This document shows, one piece after another, positions 24,101 through 44,371 of a DNA stretch of 64,000 bases (position 1 is its first letter; every line of letters starts with the position of its first letter). The notes under the pieces are model-generated. The model was not told the DNA's origin and searched no databases. It saw nothing but the letters and a program-made list of their open reading frames with translations. Made by a program: the position numbers and the translations under genes. Origin of the DNA: Corallochytrium limacisporum Hawaii (taxonomy: Eukaryota; Protista; Pluriformea); assembly GCA_002811645.1 (NCBI GenBank), contig PDIP01000046.1, forward strand, positions 1 to 64,000. Direction: 5' to 3'.

Positions 24101-25807
24101 GCCCATTTCGACCTCGATAATGACCTCCTCCTTGACAGCCAGCTCTTGGACCACGTCCTCCTTCATGCGCCGTAGGAGAATGGGCATCAAGAGCTTCTTC
24201 AGAGCCTCAACCTGTCCGACGTCTTGTACATTTCCGTAGTTCTCGTCAAAGACCTCAGCACTCAGATGGCGACCAGGTTCCATGAAGTCCAGAAGCGTGT
24301 GCAGTTCTGCGGTGTCGTTTTGCAACGGCGTGCCTGTCAAAAGAACACGGTGACTGCTTCGGAGAGTCGAGAGATCCGTGAAGGTCTTCGACGTTCGGCT
24401 CTTTAATCTATGGGCTTCGTCAACGATAATAACTTCCCACTCAACGTTCCTGAAGAAGGATAACTCTCTCATTACCGTCTCATACGTGACGAGAACAAGC
24501 TCTGGTTTCATAGTTTGTTTGTGTTTGTCCCAGATCTCGTATCTCTCGATGATTCGTCGATCTTGAGCATCTCCTTGCACAACCACGCAATCAAAGGTGG
24601 TCCACAGTTTGGCCTCCCGTTGCCAATTTAGGATCACCGATAACGGCACTACAATCAAGAATGGGCCCCGTCGATGAGCAAACTTCTGCATCCACTGAAG
24701 GAACATCAAGGCTTGAATAGTCTTCCCCAATCCCATTTCGTCAGCCAAGATGCAGCCTCTGCCCTTTGCCCAACAATTGGCCATCCACAAAACACCTTCC
24801 TGCTGATGCGGTCGGAGGGCGAGTAAGGACTCTGGGTCTACGAGTTGGTTGTCCACTTCATCCTTCCGAGGCTTTACCCGAACATTTTGACCTACTATGC
24901 GGGCGTTTCTCTTGATGGCAATGGGTACCTTGTGCTTAGTTCGATTGGAGAATTCCTCTATGTTTTCGAAACCAATGCCTGGCTCAGCTTCCCATGTACA
25001 TGCTTTGTACGGAAGGTCGTCCCACTTCACCAAATAAAAGGCTGTGTCATCATTGCCTCTTCGTCGTGCCACTACCCTTTCAATGTGGTCCCATCTGGGG
25101 TCATAGAAAGGTTCTTTGTCCTTTCTGTTCGCTGTCTTATTAAAGTGCATAGTTAGCGTGGATGTGCGGACATCAAACTGTTTCTGACACTCGGTCCCAG
25201 TGTACCATACGCAATCACGGTACGCCCTGTTCTTGAATTTCACAAGAAACAAGGCCTTCGTCCAATTAGTAGCTTTTGCATGAGCGTATGGATCGACCCC
25301 ATTGGGATCTTCCTTATCTTCACCAGGACGTAGTGCTGGACGCCAGCAAACGAGTCGCTCAAACTCCCTTAAAGTTGGGAGCGGAATGTCCCCACTGACT
25401 GCCGTAGAAATGCTTTTTGCTGAGGACTTGGACGAGGGTTTTTTCTTGGCCACGACAAGTGCTTTACCGCTCCTCTTTGTATTGAAATCACTGTCATCTG
25501 AGTCAGGATCAAACTCAGTGTCGCTCTGGCTTTCAAGGGAGTCACTGTCGGAATCCGATGAGTAGGCTCTATCCTTCGTAACAGGAAGTGATTCAGAGCT
25601 GCGGAAGTCAACGTCAGACGCATTGCTCATATCTGGAGCGTCCATGTCCTCCTTGTAAGAGACAACCTTTCGAGCCCTCCGCTGACCTCGCCGTCGGCCT
25701 TCGCCGGATCCAAAAATGTCCATGGATTTCTCGTTACTTCCAAGCTCCTTAAGGGGACGCCGTGACCCTCTTGGCCACGGACTGTCATCTTGTTCCATGG
25801 GCCCCAT
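21101..25807 (-). CDS. Chromodomain helicase DNA-binding remodeller, CHD6-9/Kismet-like
   Basis: Two chromodomains (FLVKFKNRAY; YLVKWDDLPY..CTWE), SNF2 motifs ILADEMGLGKT, DEAH and DSDWNPQND.QAMARCHRIGQ, and C-terminal LPVWYTPGLHDMLLL resembling the CHD6-9 LPxWW...HDxxLL block. Confidence 0.92.
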   Translation of the reverse strand: MGPMEQDDSPWPRGSRRPLKELGSNEKSMDIFGSGEGRRRGQRRARKVVSYKEDMDAPDMSNASDVDFRSSESLPVTKDRAYSSDSDSDSLESQSDTEFDPDSDDSDFNTKRSGKALVVAKKKPSSKSSAKSISTAVSGDIPLPTLREFERLVCWRPALRPGEDKEDPNGVDPYAHAKATNWTKALFLVKFKNRAYRDCVWYTGTECQKQFDVRTSTLTMHFNKTANRKDKEPFYDPRWDHIERVVARRRGNDDTAFYLVKWDDLPYKACTWEAEPGIGFENIEEFSNRTKHKVPIAIKRNARIVGQNVRVKPRKDEVDNQLVDPESLLALRPHQQEGVLWMANCWAKGRGCILADEMGLGKTIQALMFLQWMQKFAHRRGPFLIVVPLSVILNWQREAKLWTTFDCVVVQGDAQDRRIIERYEIWDKHKQTMKPELVLVTYETVMRELSFFRNVEWEVIIVDEAHRLKSRTSKTFTDLSTLRSSHRVLLTGTPLQNDTAELHTLLDFMEPGRHLSAEVFDENYGNVQDVGQVEALKKLLMPILLRRMKEDVVQELAVKEEVIIEVEMGVLQRRIYRALFERDTAILSSNEKGLRGPRLTNLHMELRKVCNHPYLITDMETRILDQERERRLAEGVEPYNPDPHDMLTKVSGKMVLLGKLLPQLIKDGHKVLIFSQMARVLDILEDFLLGEEVGYVRLDGSVTGKQRQTAIDTFTNDEKSEIPVFLLCTKAGGVGINLVAADTVVIYDSDWNPQNDIQAMARCHRIGQTKSVKVFRLLVKNSYERKMFDVASKKLGLDRAILTDGVKGSADAIDNKPSAQELERLLREGAYAALEDESGEAAKFADEDINTILARRTVTINTAEDEEERRKAVAGGMFSKISFGADAENDDAFVELEGEDFWNQWATKAKRKVKDEKALALLTGESASIGTDASDATSRRRRKLASSTNTEAIQEIDDEEDDDEKEDDGDFRDPKRPKRLATEWTKKQVKSMLESIKRYQGCELEKQCQLIQHPELTPALLAPLTKALIHQWRDKCGPDSDKPDLKAAWEGIYNQIGDVKVEDEPTYLMMKDGLRRAYEALESSWQATMQFRSMLLAVSDDLKFRESLAADEDLRLRVANCFSGRAKGIPEDWVAHDNHVLIDLTLKYGMNNFDDLLSDDKAAPLCAKVSRAWHASKLQDDTAPRKEPPKPRKQSGKSKKTEMQPHDFKRILRKQVKELADHTDMLASDVRRTAATKERIVLRTETIVREQPLDCTLECIIMHQYDDEDDKPYETQEFGPMTDADMPQTADVLQAFKQIMLKDDGQRAAAITLVMEGLINYGWPGALSGLVSHSAQRKNFVRACDFNAKIKNHQIVDRFMMETPETFSHFVLAMVLAFALQKLGKQYLIDLEDQGTPTAWVEPAFNTAVRSPDLRRWALWKLAGGMVAKMSLTESNVKKALCAIHSMDELRRIAIKGPYKCLVQKYSNNIAEESKEEGSVELYEMCSWTKTMPAKGLPVWYTPGLHDMLLLTTSIYVPFTSLHRHPLSFFANTDDDMVTGFVGRKETRHRLRTIAPLVNMRLNQQKTN

Positions 25808-26034
25808 GCTGGCCCAATCACGGCGATGAACCCGCTGTTACATTAGGTCAAATAAAAACACAGCGTGAAGAAGCCCAGCTCTTTGAATAAATACTCTGTA
25901 GCACCCGAACTACCTGTGCAATCATAAATTGAGACCTCCTTCCCGCCAGACAGCAAAGCAAAGGTTGCCACAAATCGGTCATGGCTATTAGCAATCCCCC
26001 CTTCCTTCTCCCTTTCAGACACAAAAATCTGAAC

Positions 26035-26046
26035 TTTTCGCGCGAA
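26035..26046. promoter_or_regulatory. Candidate palindromic E2F site upstream of the CHD gene
   Basis: TTTTCGCGCGAA matches TTTSSCGC on one strand and nearly on the other; it lies about 230 bp upstream of the ATG, beside a C/G tract. Confidence 0.4.
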
Positions 26047-26304
26047 CTGACTGACTGCCCGAGAGGCACGACGAGGATAACCGCCTCCCCTTCCCCACCC
26101 CCCGCCCGGGGGGGGGGGCCGGGTTTTAGGAGGCAAAGTGAGGTGAGCTCTACCCTAGATTCCTTTGATGCGAAGTTTGGCAGCTGCCGTGTGACTTTGT
26201 GGCATCCGCGGTAGATGGAAGCTAGAGAATGGCAAGACGCAGAATCATGAAAACAAGAGATCCAGATTTCTATGTTTGGGCTAACGAAATTATTTATGTT
26301 TTCC

Positions 26305-27867
26305 TCACTTGACTGCCTGCGGCTTGGACGGGCTGCTGGATTTGGATCCCCCAAACATACGCTTGAGGATGCCCTTCTTCGGCCGCATGCTCTTTAGAAT
26401 GCCACCTTTCTTTTTCTTGCCGCCCTTCTTCTTCTTCTCTTCATCAACCAGCCTGTGACCGGTAACGTGACCATCTTCGTCCACTTCGATGTTTTCAGGT
26501 TTACCAGTAAACGATACAGCCCGGCTAAGATTGTCACCACCGCTGGTAGCATCGTCGCCGGCTTCCTCCTTTTCCTCGGAGTGTGGTAATGGCTTGTCGA
26601 CCTTGGCCAAACTAAGCCGAGATTGGCTCATTTCAACGTCTTCATTATCTCCGGTTGCTAGAATCTCCCTCGGCGGTGCTGGTGGCTCGTTTGGGATCTC
26701 GTCTTCCGCACCGAATTGCACACTACGCTGACTACCGTGAGGACTTACAGAGCGCTGCCGTTGCAAAGGTGCTTCTGGAGTGTGCCTCTCGACTTTGGCG
26801 TCTGGTTCTTCGCTGTGGAAAACTTTGTCGATTTTTGCAGCACTAAGGCGCCGGTTCGACTCGCTGGATAGGGAATCATCGATTTCATCCTCAGCTGGTG
26901 TCCCACTGCGCTGCGAGGACGCCTCGGAAGGCCCCTTTGAAGTACCCAGACCCTCATCAGTATCCTCTTCTCCGTTCTTTCCGCTTGGAGCAAGGATGAC
27001 TGGGACTACATCATGCACTGCTGTAGCACTTCCATGCTTTGGCACATCTCCCATGGGCTTATCCACTTTCGCAAATTCAAACTTGCTATGATAAATCTTC
27101 TCAGACTCCCCAAAAGAAACCTTACGATTGCCAGATCTGGTCGATGATGAGCGTGACAGCGGTGCATCCCCTTCTTCCTCTTCCTGTGAGACGAATTCCA
27201 CGCTAGTGGTGGCATCGAAGGAAACTCTGCGTTCGCGAGGAGTCAGCTGTTCCTTTGTCGGAGGAGCCTCCGGCCCATCATTAACGGCAATATCGATGTT
27301 GGTTTGACTATTGCTGTGCGTGTTATTAAGAACTTCGAGTTCCTCAATGCTCATTTCCTCAGATTCCGGAGCAAGTCCATCGGTAATTGCCGCTCCTACG
27401 GTATCACTGACTGGGAGTGTATGATCTTCACCACTAGAGAAAGTCTTGTCAATGGAGGCATGGGAAAGTTTTTCCGATATGCAAGTCTCGTCAAATTCTT
27501 TCTCTTCTCCTTCATTAGCTTCGCTGGCACCATTCGAAATATCCCTAAACGACACCGACTTTGCCACATTGCGCTTGCTCTCCAGGTCTGCAGTCTCTGT
27601 CTCAATTATCTTCTTGGCTTCGTCCAGGTACACCTCCTCGTTTCCTTCATGATGCGCGTGGTGACCACTAAGAGCCTTGGAGGCACCATCAACTCCGGCG
27701 ACACTCAGAGGAGTTACCACTTCCTTCATGTTGTCTGTGTCCGGTGGTACAGGGACGTCACTGCTCTTTTCCAGCATCTCTTTGCCTCCGTCATTGCCAA
27801 TGGCGTCAGTCTCACCAAACGAGACGTGAGAGTCATTCTTTCCGACAGATGTGCCGTGCGCTGACAT
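26305..27867 (-). CDS. Orphan acidic disordered protein with repeated RVxF and SILK-type PP1-docking motifs
   Basis: 520-aa ATG-initiated ORF (accATG) with protein-like composition and internal peptide repeats; no recognisable globular domain. Confidence 0.85.
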   Translation of the reverse strand: MSAHGTSVGKNDSHVSFGETDAIGNDGGKEMLEKSSDVPVPPDTDNMKEVVTPLSVAGVDGASKALSGHHAHHEGNEEVYLDEAKKIIETETADLESKRNVAKSVSFRDISNGASEANEGEEKEFDETCISEKLSHASIDKTFSSGEDHTLPVSDTVGAAITDGLAPESEEMSIEELEVLNNTHSNSQTNIDIAVNDGPEAPPTKEQLTPRERRVSFDATTSVEFVSQEEEEGDAPLSRSSSTRSGNRKVSFGESEKIYHSKFEFAKVDKPMGDVPKHGSATAVHDVVPVILAPSGKNGEEDTDEGLGTSKGPSEASSQRSGTPAEDEIDDSLSSESNRRLSAAKIDKVFHSEEPDAKVERHTPEAPLQRQRSVSPHGSQRSVQFGAEDEIPNEPPAPPREILATGDNEDVEMSQSRLSLAKVDKPLPHSEEKEEAGDDATSGGDNLSRAVSFTGKPENIEVDEDGHVTGHRLVDEEKKKKGGKKKKGGILKSMRPKKGILKRMFGGSKSSSPSKPQAVK

Positions 27868-29969
27868 GGTTTACCAACGCAAGTTCCTCAAATTGTTTAC
27901 TATATAAAATTTCCTTACCCAAGCATCTGCACGCTGTAAACTACAATATGTACGATTCGAGTTGTGTTGAAACAGCGTCTTCGTTTTTACTACTTCTTAA
28001 TTTTCTGGCTTATTTGCCAGTAATCCTTCACTCGCGGTATAGGTGCCTTTCGATCACTTAGACACCTGCTTTGTTGCCAGCACACCGCAGAAAGTCTATA
28101 CTTACAAAGAGCCATAAAAAACATACTGCCACATTTAGTCCTGCAATTTATGCGCCACCAACACGGCCACTGTTTGTCATTTGCCATAGAAGTCCCCCGC
28201 ACTGCTCTCGAGGGATGGGCCTCAGCGGGGTGGGGTTGGGTTTGCCCTCGACCTGGTTCGTTCATACCTCAATGCCTGTCGCTCTAGGGCCCCTTGCCTT
28301 ATCCTCCTCCGCTACTATTTGCACTGTTATCGAGTGCGCTCTCCAGTGTTCTGTACGTGTTGAGCAAGCGGTATTATATTCGCCCATTCTCGGCAGTCGA
28401 TTCTTTCGCCCCCATTTTCTCTCAGCTTCTTCAGGGATTTTGTTGTCCCCCATACTGAAAGTATTGGAGGAGCTCACAATCCCATTCTCTGGCTCCCTGA
28501 TTCTGCTGATGGGTGTCAGGATAACGTGTGGTAAAAACGCTCCAGATTCGTAATACCGAGCAGAAGAGAAGGTGAAATGGCTTCTGCGGGAAAGCTTTTT
28601 TTTTTCAGCAGCCCGAGTTGGGCTCAATCTGCTTCTCCCCGGCTCCCATGGAACGGTGTCGAACAGTCACACCTCTGCGGCCATCCGTACGCGCACTCCG
28701 GAACTTCCGCACTTGGTCATCTTGTCAGTGCGTTCATACTTGCTGCATTTTGAGCTTGGTACAAATCTAATGTCGATCTTTCGGCTCATCTTGGTCCTCG
28801 TGTGGATGAAGATGGCGCGTTGGCTCTTCCTATGTTACTGCCGCTGTTTGAAAACGCGGCCCGCTGCCGTTTAAGTCGAGGGGACGCTAATGACCGTTAC
28901 CTCAGACCGCATAGTGTGTCACAGCGCCAGGCAGGGCCCTCCCCTCCAACCCCAAACCGCCCGCTGGGAGCGTCAGTAGCCCACACCACAGACGAACCCA
29001 AGTAACCCGCAGTCATTCACTATGAAAAGTGACGTAAATTAGATACGCAACAGGGTTACAGGCCGATGCAGCATGTTTGCATGGCACCCTCTTCCAGCAG
29101 CCCCCCCCCCCCACTTCATCTTCGCAAAGCGAAAGTACCCGGGAGTATCTTGCGTCTGCAGCAATTTTGCAGCCGCGGTAGTGAACTAAGTAGTTGGGAG
29201 GAGGGTTGGTGATGGACCCCCCGGGTGGGGGGGGGAACGGGACACGGGGTTATGTATTTCTATTCACGAATTTTCTCGCACCAAAAGCACGAGCGGTCAC
29301 ACTGCTGTATAAATGCTGTCATTTTTCCGCTACACTGTGTCTACCCCGTGATTGTTTGGCCTATACCTTCGGCTTCATGCCGAACCGAGCAACAAAACTT
29401 CATTGGGAGGAGGAATAGGTGACAACTGCAGCCGAAAAAAACAAACCCCCCACCCCTCCCTAATCAAAAAAAAACTTGGGCCATTTTGTTCCGGCTTGAG
29501 AATTTTTTCACCGTCTCGTCACTCGTTGCGGGAAATAAAGCGGAGAAATACACTGCGGAGGGGAGCTCGGTGAGAAATTTTGACTGCTCGGAAAGATACT
29601 GGTACTTTCAGTATTCCCATGATGGTTGCGGAGGATGGCTATAATTCTAGGGCACACACAGCTGCGTTTGTAGTGGTGGATGGATAAACCACCAACAGTA
29701 CTGGCGCTCCACCAAATCTCTACGGATTGACTTGCCAGGGTTATCAATTCAAAACACCACCGATGGGTCAGATTGTAATCATTCGGTTTCACAAAAAGGT
29801 TGCACCCACTCTACGCACCGTGCCCAGCCAGGGTGCCAATTTCTTATGTTTTCAACGGCCACACCTCTCTCGCACTTTGGCTCTTTCACCTGGGGAGTAC
29901 GTTGGATGGTGTATTTTGATTCTAAGTACTAAAACTACTATCTAACTGACAAATATGTCCTTTCAATCC

Positions 29970-30005
29970 AATTATATAATTAATCAAATTGATTTAAATC
30001 AATTT
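29970..30005. repeat. Two adjacent perfect AT-rich palindromes
   Basis: aattatataatt (29970-29981) and aaattgatttaaatcaattt (29986-30005). Confidence 0.85.
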
Positions 30006-32655
30006 AGATCATTCCTTTGATTCGGAGCCATGCTTCCTCTGTTTCCTCAACTTCCACGCAATCTGAGAGGAGGGCCGCCCTTCTTCTTGCAGGTGCGCTC
30101 CGATTCGTCCACATTGCGCAATGCAGGCCAGAGCAGTGCTTCTTTCCGAAAGCGTGTAAGGACAACCATTGACCTCTCGGTCAATGAATGGAAAGTGTAA
30201 TCCATTCACATCTACCGGACCGCTTACTGCAGTTGGGATTCGAAGGCTATTGGAGGATTTTCACAACCTTGCGTGATGTATTCACGATGTGACAGATCTC
30301 TGTCTCCTGTAGATGGCGCCGTTCATTTCTTTCCTTCGGAGGATTTCTCACGGGCCGATTTACACCTCGCGATCCATCACCGCCGTTTCGTAGAACAATT
30401 AGTAGGGGCACATCGGAGATTGGCTGCATCGAACACCAGTACCTTCCGGGGAACGTGCTCGGCTTTCTTATGAAGCGATGGATGTGAGTCGTGCGCCCAG
30501 TCTGTATTTTATTGTGCGGTTCTGCGGCACCAGGTGGTAAAGCTTGGTGGGGCAATTTCTCAAAATCTTGGTGGGTGATTCCGCCTTCAAAGCAGGTCGT
30601 CTGAGTCCATCTGGGACCCGGGAAGGGTGCCGCTGACGAAACTCTGAACAGTCTTAGAATAGTCCGCGAATGGAGCTCGCGATGCAGCGGGACCACTGCG
30701 CCGTATTGTGCTTTCAGTGGGCGAGGAATTCCGCAGTGAAAGGCACGGAGGTCAAGGGACGACTTCGAAAGATACTCTCCGAGCCCGTGCTAAATGCATC
30801 CAAGACGCATGCAACATATCTCCTCCCACACAACTACCGGAAAGCCGAGATCTGTTGTGTTGCTGTATGGGATTGAGAGCTGTTGGGGACTCTTTGCCTC
30901 ACTTGGACATAATTTGTTTCCGATTGCGTTAATCTCTGTCCATGTTTTGTGGGTACCAGCGATTCTGTACGAATGGTTCATCGAAGCCTTCCAAACTATG
31001 CAACCCGCCTTAAGAATCTTTAAACCCCGAAGCCGTCAAATAGTTGAGCAAGCAGTGAGCAATGGACGACGCAAAGGACCCTCCCCCGTGGTATAGACAG
31101 CACTGCACCAAATCACTGATCCAAATTAAACAACATGTCACGTCGCCAGAGAGAATGCATTTGGATGAACTAACCCTACCACAACAGAGCTGCCAAAGGG
31201 GCAAGTCCCCGTGCGTTCAACGAACTACAGGGGTGTCGCACCAAGTCTGCTGCATGTTTCATATCCCTGTTTGTGTTTGGGGCGTAGTTGAAGTATACTC
31301 AACTGCACGTTACCAGTCTGACTAGAAGGACTAGCGAATCCAACCCCTCGCGCTCCCCGAGCTGCGAGGGGGGGCCTTCATTCACGGAACTGGTGAGAAT
31401 ATTCCGAAGGGTGTCGGGACCCTCCCCTCACAGCAGTTTCAGTGTTGACTCCGCTGAAGTTGGAAACGGATCTTCAACGTAGCTTTTGATGGAACAGTGA
31501 CAGCTTCCGACAAGCGCCGAGCTATCTCGAGGGAGGTTATGCTCGCTGGTGGCAGTCGTCTCGTCACATGTCGTTGACGGGCGCCTGGTCCCTCACCCTA
31601 GCATTTGCAAACGCCTGGCACGGCCCATGTAACTCTGTAGTGGATTCTTCCAATCTAACACACCTGGACCTTCTGCATTCTTCCTCGTTCTTACGTTCTT
31701 CCCCGTGTTCGTTTGTGGTATCGTACTTTACCATACCCGATAGTTGAGAAGAATTAGTCAGGCCGCCCTCCCGGTGCGTCAATATCTTATACCCAATGGT
31801 CAATAGGGTCAATGGGCTGCTGTGGTGACAGGGGCCCCTTGATGAAGGGAGCCTTGACTACTTTGGCACACTGACCATCCTTCGAATAAATTTTATATCC
31901 GGAATATTATTATTATTAGGAGACTGGATTGAACTACGCATGGGACATGAATATGCACACCTTTAAGTAAATCATGATTTAGTGGAGTCTGGCTTCAGAG
32001 TCCAGGCGAACGAACCTCTGGAGCTTCAACTCCCCATTTCCTTCCGTCCAGCGAAGATCTGTATCAGAGGACCATTCTCTGTTTGGGTCGCCATCACATG
32101 AGAAACTGAATATCAATGATTCTCCTTCCCACTTCCTCAGGTGCCGTGGGTCTGGAGCATTTCTTAGGCGCCCCGCAGTTAATTCTCTATACCATTGTAA
32201 TTTTGTAACGGGGAGGGTCCTTTTGTGAGTTCAAGTCTTTGCATTTCACAGACGTAATTTCCTTTATATCGTGATGGTCAGTCGCGAGAAGATCGAGCTT
32301 GACGAGGAGCGTCAATAGGTCAGTCCACCTCCCCCCACACCGCAGGTGCCTGAGTTTCCATCCCACCCAGTCTTAAGTGGGCTTATTGCTGACGAATGCA
32401 CGATGACAAATTTGTAGACGAAAGCGCAGGCAAAGGCTCCACGGAGTGAGAGAGAAAATGGCAGTTCGCCGCGTAAGGGGAGGGCCAACGTTGGTTTCCT
32501 TGCATCCCACGGGCGGCTCATTTTCTCCTTCCTCGGCAGGGAAACAGGGCCAGGCTACCTAATGTGCTAGGTCCAGAGAGACCAATACGAGCAGTCCGAC
32601 TGCTGTAGTCGTCACAAGAGCAACATGCTCATGGAACGGAGTACTAAGGTCCATG

Positions 32656-43336: not shown

Positions 43337-44371
43337 TCATGACCGCTTCTTCGGCTGCTGATCTTTCAGTTGCTGCTGTCGCTGCTTCATGCGCCGTTCA
43401 GCGGCAGCGGCAGCGGCTTTCCTGGCGGAGCTAAGGCCCTTGCCAGTACCTTTGGGGTCTGCCAGCAGCAGATTGTTCCGGCTGGTCTGTTCGACCACGT
43501 TAGGTAGATCGTCTGTGGTGTCTAGAGGGTCATCTATTCCTCCACCAACCGCTGTTCCTAATGGACGAGGATTGAATACATCAGAATTTGTTGATGTCGC
43601 ATTGGATCCCAACACGTGCCCTGTAGACTTGGTCCAGTCCAGCTGATCTGCCTCCTTTGTCAGTTCACTATTGAGTTTCTTGAAATCATCGTCGTGGTCA
43701 TTATACACCATATGCGTCAATTCGTGGATCAGCACCTTTTTGATAGTCTCGTAGTAGCGGAAGCCCGACAGATCATCGGTCCGCAATCGCAGCGCTATCT
43801 CCATACCTTTGCCTTTATTGTATCCCAAAATGCATACTTCACTTACGCCTACCTTACCTTCTGGCTCCATTTCGTGCAATTTACCCACAAGCCACTTCCT
43901 TTTCTTCATGACGGCTCTGATGCCGGGATCACTGTTTAGCCGCTCAAGCAAGGCCATGGCTGCATACGGAGGCGGGCTCCTGAATTTATGTAATACTTCC
44001 ATTGTCTTGAAGCCATACGTCTTCCCCCACTCTAGATCTCTATCCCGCACAGCGGAATAGATAGTTGCAGAAGCATGCGTGCGATCATAGATGTGTTGTG
44101 CTGCTTTCAGCTTAGCCTCCTTCTGTAACGTATCCTGCAGCGTACTCTGCTCGGTTGCGAATAGGCGTATCAGTCCACCATTTGCGATAACCTTTATATC
44201 ACTGATACGCTCTTCATCATGCACCTTAACACTGCCTGGAAATGCAAGCTTCACTGTTTCTACTGCTAGACTGAACTGCTCCACTAGAATCTTCTTGAAC
44301 TCGCCATATGTACATTCGCATGATACTGTCACTGAGCGTACGCTACCCTTCCAGCTAATCTTCACCTCCAT
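43337..44371 (-). CDS. Ubiquitin-like + WLM metalloprotease (Wss1-like DNA-protein crosslink protease family)
   Basis: N-terminal UBL-like segment and WLM motifs VMKKRKWLVGKLHEM, ILGYN, IALRLRTDD, HELTH, HDDDF. Confidence 0.92.
   Translation of the reverse strand: MEVKISWKGSVRSVTVSCECTYGEFKKILVEQFSLAVETVKLAFPGSVKVHDEERISDIKVIANGGLIRLFATEQSTLQDTLQKEAKLKAAQHIYDRTHASATIYSAVRDRDLEWGKTYGFKTMEVLHKFRSPPPYAAMALLERLNSDPGIRAVMKKRKWLVGKLHEMEPEGKVGVSEVCILGYNKGKGMEIALRLRTDDLSGFRYYETIKKVLIHELTHMVYNDHDDDFKKLNSELTKEADQLDWTKSTGHVLGSNATSTNSDVFNPRPLGTAVGGGIDDPLDTTDDLPNVVEQTSRNNLLLADPKGTGKGLSSARKAAAAAAERRMKQRQQQLKDQQPKKRS

Follow-up and report, generated by a model that had tools for sequence, protein, structure and literature searches.

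The locus and its transcript

The window analysed here is a stretch of 64,000 nucleotides from the Corallochytrium limacisporum contig PDIP01000046.1. On its minus strand, positions 26305–27867 hold an open reading frame (ORF) of 520 codons that begins with ATG and ends with a stop codon at 26305–26307. The ORF lies between a gene for a CHD-type remodeller and a 4.8-kb interval without long ORFs, the latter being upstream of the gene. The host genome comprises 24,109,830 bases in 286 contigs. The published assembly of this species is 24.1 Mb in size, with 7,535 genes and an intron density of 0.0 per kb of coding sequence (PMC5560861), and the long genes of the window are likewise uninterrupted ORFs.

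In order to look for transcripts, the contigs of two public sequencing runs from 2015 (X1 and X2), whose RNA nature is our guess, were compared with positions 25000–30900 of the window. X1 yields a contig of 1,728 nt on 26278–28005 and X2 a contig of 1,516 nt on 26424–27939, both colinear with the genome and without joints. Together they outline an unspliced transcript-like contig on the minus strand (26278–28005) that consists of a leader of about 138 nt, the ORF and a trailer of about 27 nt. An AATAA-like signal is located directly past the stop codon, and the start codon has an A at position −3. The leader also holds a three-codon upstream ORF, ATG CTT GGG TAA, at 27926–27937 (minus strand). 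Neither run has a contig over 25985–26181 or 28152–30900, the latter belonging to the ORF-less interval; a gap in coverage proves nothing by itself. Since the contigs end at gene borders, and amount to about 14 Mb for a 24-Mb genome, we infer that the runs fit a transcriptome.

Within the ORF, X2 differs from the window at 7 sites (~0.5%), 5 of them synonymous and 2 non-synonymous (T209A and S261N), none in the motif cores described below. Three further differences lie between 25552 and 25665, within the 5′ portion of the CHD gene next to it, which fits a second isolate of the same species as the origin of X2. The 5:2 ratio in the ORF gives P ~0.01 in a rough hand estimate that assumes one quarter of changes to be synonymous by chance, and the synonymous excess supports a translated and constrained reading frame. 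Judged from these sequence comparisons, the gene looks real, i.e. transcribed and coding.

Composition, predicted disorder and search for relatives

The encoded protein is acidic (net charge −37), rich in Ser and Glu and devoid of hydrophobic segments; by composition, its C-terminal tail (aa 477–520; 26308–26439, minus strand) is rich in Lys. The first-pass annotation of this DNA had described an orphan, disordered protein, and both attributes are supported. A single-sequence AlphaFold model has a mean pLDDT of 43.6 and one helix (aa 77–102; 27562–27639, minus strand). At all of the motifs the pLDDT is below 50, which for a single-sequence model is weak by itself. The chain is thus predicted to be intrinsically disordered.

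No relative was found in any of the searches. Pfam gives no match at E ≤ 1 and NCBIfam gives none. An exhaustive phmmer search of 1.84 billion representative proteins returns neither a relative nor a self-hit, and a word search, the PDB sequences, the ESM Atlas and a scan of metagenome contigs are equally blank; the organism's own genome contains no paralogue. The exact 520-residue sequence is absent from a public collection of 15 billion proteins while five neighbouring ORFs are present there (source eukprot), and the gene may therefore be missing from the published gene set.

Inventory of motifs

All of the motifs on which the first-pass annotation had built its reading of the ORF, namely docking motifs for protein phosphatase 1 (PP1) and an interleaved repeat, are found at the residues it had assigned to them. 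Scanned with the class pattern [RK]-x(0,1)-[VI]-{P}-[FW], the six proposed RVxF-type motifs resolve into five strict matches and one degenerate copy. As strict we count matches to the two strictest published consensuses, [HKR][ACHKMNQRSTV]V[CHKNQRST][FW] and [KRL][KRSTAMVHNQ][VI]{FIMYDP}[FW]. These are passed by KSVSF (aa 103–107; 27547–27561), which follows immediately after the only predicted helix, RRVSF (aa 213–217; 27217–27231), RKVSF (aa 248–252; 27112–27126), RSVQF (aa 381–385; 26713–26727) and RAVSF (aa 449–453; 26509–26523), all encoded on the minus strand. The sixth, SHVSF (aa 13–17; 27817–27831, minus strand), has no basic residue and fails at that position. Val and Phe are invariant in all six copies. 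A phosphorylatable Ser occupies the x position in five of the six, the exception being RSVQF, in which it is replaced by Gln. The flanks are basic on the N-terminal side and acidic on the C-terminal side. The hydrophobic pairs that had been proposed to lie 5–8 residues after several motifs hold up weakly: only IY (aa 258–259), at +6/+7 of RKVSF, is a consecutive pair, whereas VEF and IEV are of the form hydrophobic-x-hydrophobic. The RSVQF segment may resemble the part of NIPP1 that contains RVTF; with aa 372–401 as the query, phmmer finds nothing at E ≤ 10 among PDB chains, a library that possibly lacks the NIPP1 peptide chain.

Two SILK-type motifs are confirmed in the Lys-rich C-terminus, GILK at aa 489–492 (26392–26403) and GILK at aa 499–502 (26362–26373), both on the minus strand. 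Their contexts, GGILKS and KGILKR, match [GS]IL[KR] with no acidic residue directly after it. Both motifs are C-terminal to every RVxF copy and lie 36–46 residues past the last one, RAVSF; the order known from inhibitor-2 and KNL1, with SILK N-terminal to RVxF, is not seen in this protein.

Interleaved with these are the four claimed copies of A[KS][VI]DK, starting at aa 137, 266, 344 and 421. We refer to them as AKxDK units: LSHASIDKTF (aa 134–143; 27439–27468); FEFAKVDKPM (aa 263–272; 27052–27081), in which Glu replaces the Ser of the other copies; LSAAKIDKVF (aa 341–350; 26818–26847), preceded by RR; and LSLAKVDKPL (aa 418–427; 26587–26616), preceded by SR, each on the minus strand.

Statistical enrichment of PP1-type motifs

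Single RVxF matches include many false positives, and two null models were used to judge the counts. The first consists of 20,000 composition-preserving shuffles of the protein. Strict RVxF motifs occur at a mean of 0.10 per shuffle, and none of the 20,000 shuffles reaches 5; SILK motifs occur at a mean of 0.02, with P ~2e-4 for the observed 2; A[KS][VI]DK occurs at a mean of 0.005, and again 0 of 20,000 shuffles reach 4. For the second, 103 ORFs without mutual overlap (53,489 aa in total) were drawn from two sources in the same genome, the window and 200 kb of a different contig. Here the density of strict RVxF motifs is 0.093 per 1000 aa as compared to 9.6 in the 520-residue protein, a difference of about 100-fold. 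At the background rate 0.05 strict motifs are expected where 5 are observed (Poisson P(≥5) ~2e-9), and scaling to the published gene number predicts ~2e-5 proteins with such a count. None of the 103 background ORFs has more than 2 strict motifs. The runner-up in this sample is an ion-transport protein of 1,511 aa (PF00520; L017:4288–8820, i.e. G000:C242:114288–118820), with three loose RVxF matches, of which two are also strict.

The enrichment is specific to PP1-type motifs as well as strong. The docking motifs of other phosphatases (B56, PxIxIT and LxVP) number zero in the protein, and strict PKA, Aurora-like, CK2 and Pro-directed patterns show no enrichment (P 0.14–0.94). A mild enrichment is observed for a 14-3-3-type pattern (8 observed vs. 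2.5 expected, P 0.003) and for [RK]xx[ST]-hydrophobic (7 observed vs. 3.0 expected, P 0.03), whose matches fall mostly on the repeat units themselves. As described next, part of the RVxF count appears to come from the internal duplication of one unit, as opposed to six independent events.

Origin of the motif copies

A recent DNA tandem repeat can be ruled out as the origin of the motif count. No DNA-level repeat common to the motif copies was found, and their synonymous codons differ, with four Val, four Arg and three Ser codons in use. Both observations indicate that the copies are old and have been kept at the protein level.

At that level a diverged repeat can be detected: five non-redundant pairs of 14-residue windows score at least 34, vs. 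0.2 in shuffles. Among the four best internal pairs is NRKVSFGESEKIYH with NRRLSAAKIDKVFH, which joins the RVxF and AKxDK classes. When the six RVxF units are compared with the four AKxDK units in the register of this pair, the mean cross-class score is higher than in all of 5,000 draws of random positions, and the ten downstream columns by themselves yield P 0.0014; as the register was picked after viewing the sequence, this support is not decisive. The AKxDK motif had been proposed to bind a second partner independently of PP1. Its alignment in register with the RVxF units, better than at random positions, runs against that proposal; by sequence, it looks like a diverged copy of the RVxF repeat unit that has lost the Phe. 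The AKxDK units keep basic-L-S (F-E in one copy) and add their own conserved A-K-[VI]-D-K. The pattern LSxAK[VI]DK has no other occurrence in the whole host genome, and is thus not a widely used motif.

Taken together, the chain appears to consist of a short unit in about ten copies, all old and diverged. The unit reads: a basic residue, x, V or L, S, a hydrophobic residue and, after a few residues, an acidic and a hydrophobic one. In 3 of the 4 AKxDK units the nearest RVxF motif is 28–37 residues away from R-L-S, and in the fourth it is 18 residues away. Other identities were also considered for the AKxDK motif or the helix, and by eye none of AKAP-type helix, D-box, SUMO, LIR or ABBA fits.

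PP1 and inhibitor-2 in the host

The host genome has three PP1c-type loci. A PP1c ORF of 313 aa (L003:1477–2418) is near-identical to human PP1-gamma over residues 6–303 (298 aligned residues, E 2e-189). The C-terminal stretch that we place around the RVxF groove differs only conservatively from the human protein. Two of the loci, G000:C251:5934–6077(+) and 43814–43957(−) (L003 and L004), agree in profile score and in the length of their open frames. They lie in opposite orientation with ~38 kb between them, which suggests an inverted duplication of recent date. The third PP1-type gene, on contig C242, is more divergent and encodes 342 aa.

An inhibitor-2 gene (PF04979, E 3.6e-18) is found at L005:1315–1863 (G000:C233), on a contig other than that of the 520-codon ORF. 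Its product carries the motifs RGILKH, KTFRF, KIDEPKTPY and HYDE. As the listed ORF starts with TTG, translation probably begins at an internal ATG, the one immediately ahead of SSGGEK. The presence of a PP1-gamma-like catalytic subunit together with a motif-bearing inhibitor-2 implies that this organism makes use of the classical docking grooves. The second SILK-type motif of the 520-residue protein, in its context KGILK, agrees with the core of RGILK in the host inhibitor-2. Kinship between the two proteins was rejected (BLASTP E 2.6, no PF04979 match), and AK[VI]DKP has no measurable resemblance to the inhibitor-2 stretch KIDEP.

Comparison with known PP1 partners

PP1 acquires its specificity from partner proteins, each of which normally offers one RVxF site. 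Motif-based partners are already known, and what appears unusual in the present sequence is the number of strict sites.

KNL1/Spc105 has a disordered region in which a SILK-type motif and RVSF lie beside a basic patch, and the Ser of RVSF is a kinase-targeted off-switch for PP1 (PMC6715587). The 520-residue protein resembles it in these features. However, KNL1 is a large protein with MELT repeats and an RWD domain at its C-terminus, and it bears one motif of each kind at its N-terminus, SILK before RVSF, whereas the protein described here has five to six RVxF motifs, SILK last and no folded domain. Neither of the two hallmarks of the KNL1/Spc105 family, the MELT repeats and the C-terminal Spc7/RWD domain, is present: there is no Pfam match and no folded C-terminal domain is predicted.

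Rif1 likewise carries RVxF and SILK in a disordered stretch. In the yeast protein RVxF precedes SILK. The motif pair of budding-yeast Rif1 is written ‘RVxF/SILK’ (PMC8820739), an order that matches that of the present protein, and some Rif1 proteins contain more than one candidate PP1 motif (PMC5437018). Unlike Rif1, which is a large HEAT-repeat protein, the 520-residue protein lacks Rif1 similarity and has more docking motifs; the N-terminal HEAT-repeat domain is absent, as judged by the lack of a Pfam match and the single-helix model.

Inhibitor-2 (PPP1R2, PF04979) is comparable in being small, acidic and disordered, and in having a KGILK-type and an RVxF-like motif, but the protein described here lacks both the PF04979 match and the HYNE-type inhibitory helix. 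A further likeness is to substrates of docked dephosphorylation, in which an RVxF tether and the putative phosphosites are separated by tens of residues of flexible chain. The engineered system of this type has one tether and one site, whereas candidate tethers (RVxF) and candidate sites (R-L-S) alternate several times in our protein.

A candidate PP1-docking protein and the alternatives

We propose that the gene encodes a PP1-binding protein that is restricted to its lineage and combines several docking sites, a reading that we would give about an even chance of being correct. The earlier view of the protein as a PP1 scaffold is supported in part (orphan status, predicted disorder, motif enrichment and a PP1c in the host), while an independent role of the AKxDK repeat and, largely, the hydrophobic pairs are not supported; sponge or scaffold behaviour, graded phospho-control and anchoring by the basic tail are hypothetical. 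RVSF and SILK are known to bind PP1, and mutation to RVSA abolishes binding (PMC5437018). The Val and Phe side chains of the RVxF copies would seat in the RVxF groove of PP1, and the last of them, RAVSF, might combine with the GILK motifs into a two-part module of higher affinity. The invariance of Val and Phe, together with the exchange of Ser for Gln in RSVQF, argues for selection on the docking residues rather than on a phospho-acceptor. The candidate docking sites are spaced 35–130 residues apart along a flexible chain, so that one chain might bind several PP1 molecules simultaneously or, as an alternative, let a single PP1 hop along it.

Phosphorylation could regulate such docking. In KNL1, PP1 is blocked when Aurora B phosphorylates the RVSF and SILK motifs, and a phosphorylatable residue occurs in about half of the validated RVxF motifs (PMC6715587). 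A basophilic kinase acting on the Ser of RVSF, which is available in five of the six copies, would release PP1 in the same manner. Moreover, the four R-L-S elements of the AKxDK units (with Glu in one copy) might be phosphosites that are served by docked PP1. In an engineered system an RVxF tether speeds dephosphorylation most when it is 20–30 residues from the phosphosite (bioRxiv 10.64898/2026.09.09.750541), and the distances to the nearest RVxF given above are close to this optimum, which is why we consider such a role for the R-L-S units.

The mild enrichment of basophilic patterns bears on a different explanation, in which the protein is a multi-site substrate of kinases of the PKA, AGC, CaMK or Aurora type, perhaps a 14-3-3 client, and its RVxF likeness is a by-product of R-x-x-S-hydrophobic. 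In RRVSF, RKVSF, RRLSA, SRLSL and RAVSF alike, position −2 or −3 is basic and position +1 hydrophobic, the 14-3-3-type and [RK]xx[ST]-hydrophobic patterns exceed their shuffled expectation, and Glu takes the place of Ser in one copy, as a phosphomimic would. Generic kinase patterns are, however, much less enriched than V-x-F, RSVQF retains Val and Phe without an acceptor, and the Val at −1 is invariant although kinase consensus motifs do not demand it. We regard this explanation as unlikely; being a kinase substrate is also compatible with PP1 docking, as KNL1-type motifs are both.

A role that does not involve PP1 at all, either through another partner or a physical one (condensate formation, a hydrophilin or stress function, or binding of nucleic acid or membrane via the Lys-rich tail), would suit an orphan whose disordered chain is extremely acidic and whose tail is polybasic, which matches no known family and whose LSxAK[VI]DK pattern is confined to it within the genome. 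It would leave unexplained the five matches to the strictest PP1 consensuses and the two SILK motifs in the tail, and we regard it as unlikely. A young or fast-evolving gene without selected function, whose motifs are relics of internal duplication, would account for the lack of any relative in the searches and for the absence of the exact sequence from a public protein collection that holds its neighbours, but is quite unlikely given that transcript-like contigs match the ORF, that changes between isolates are 5:2 in favour of synonymous ones (P ~0.01 by the same rough estimate), and that the copies of the motif retain their residues despite synonymous divergence.

The PP1-docking reading also has a more elaborate form, in which the protein would be a sponge or scaffold that holds at least four PP1c at once and releases them stepwise upon RVSF phosphorylation, with the interleaved R-L-S units acting as substrates or timers. 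We know of no described PP1 regulator of this design, and the complete scheme, drawn from the arrangement of the motifs, is in our view doubtful and quite unlikely to apply in full.

Implications

With five strict RVxF and two SILK motifs in 520 disordered residues, the protein, if it binds PP1, offers a ready-made test case for multi-site docking. It could show in what way a chain with many docking sites buffers PP1, concentrates it or hands it over, and how phosphorylation of RVSF grades this behaviour. Should PP1 not bind, the protein would instead serve as a warning against inferring function from motif counts. The host is a unicellular relative of animals, and a PP1-binding function in this lineage, if true, would show the speed at which PP1 partners originate from short motifs.
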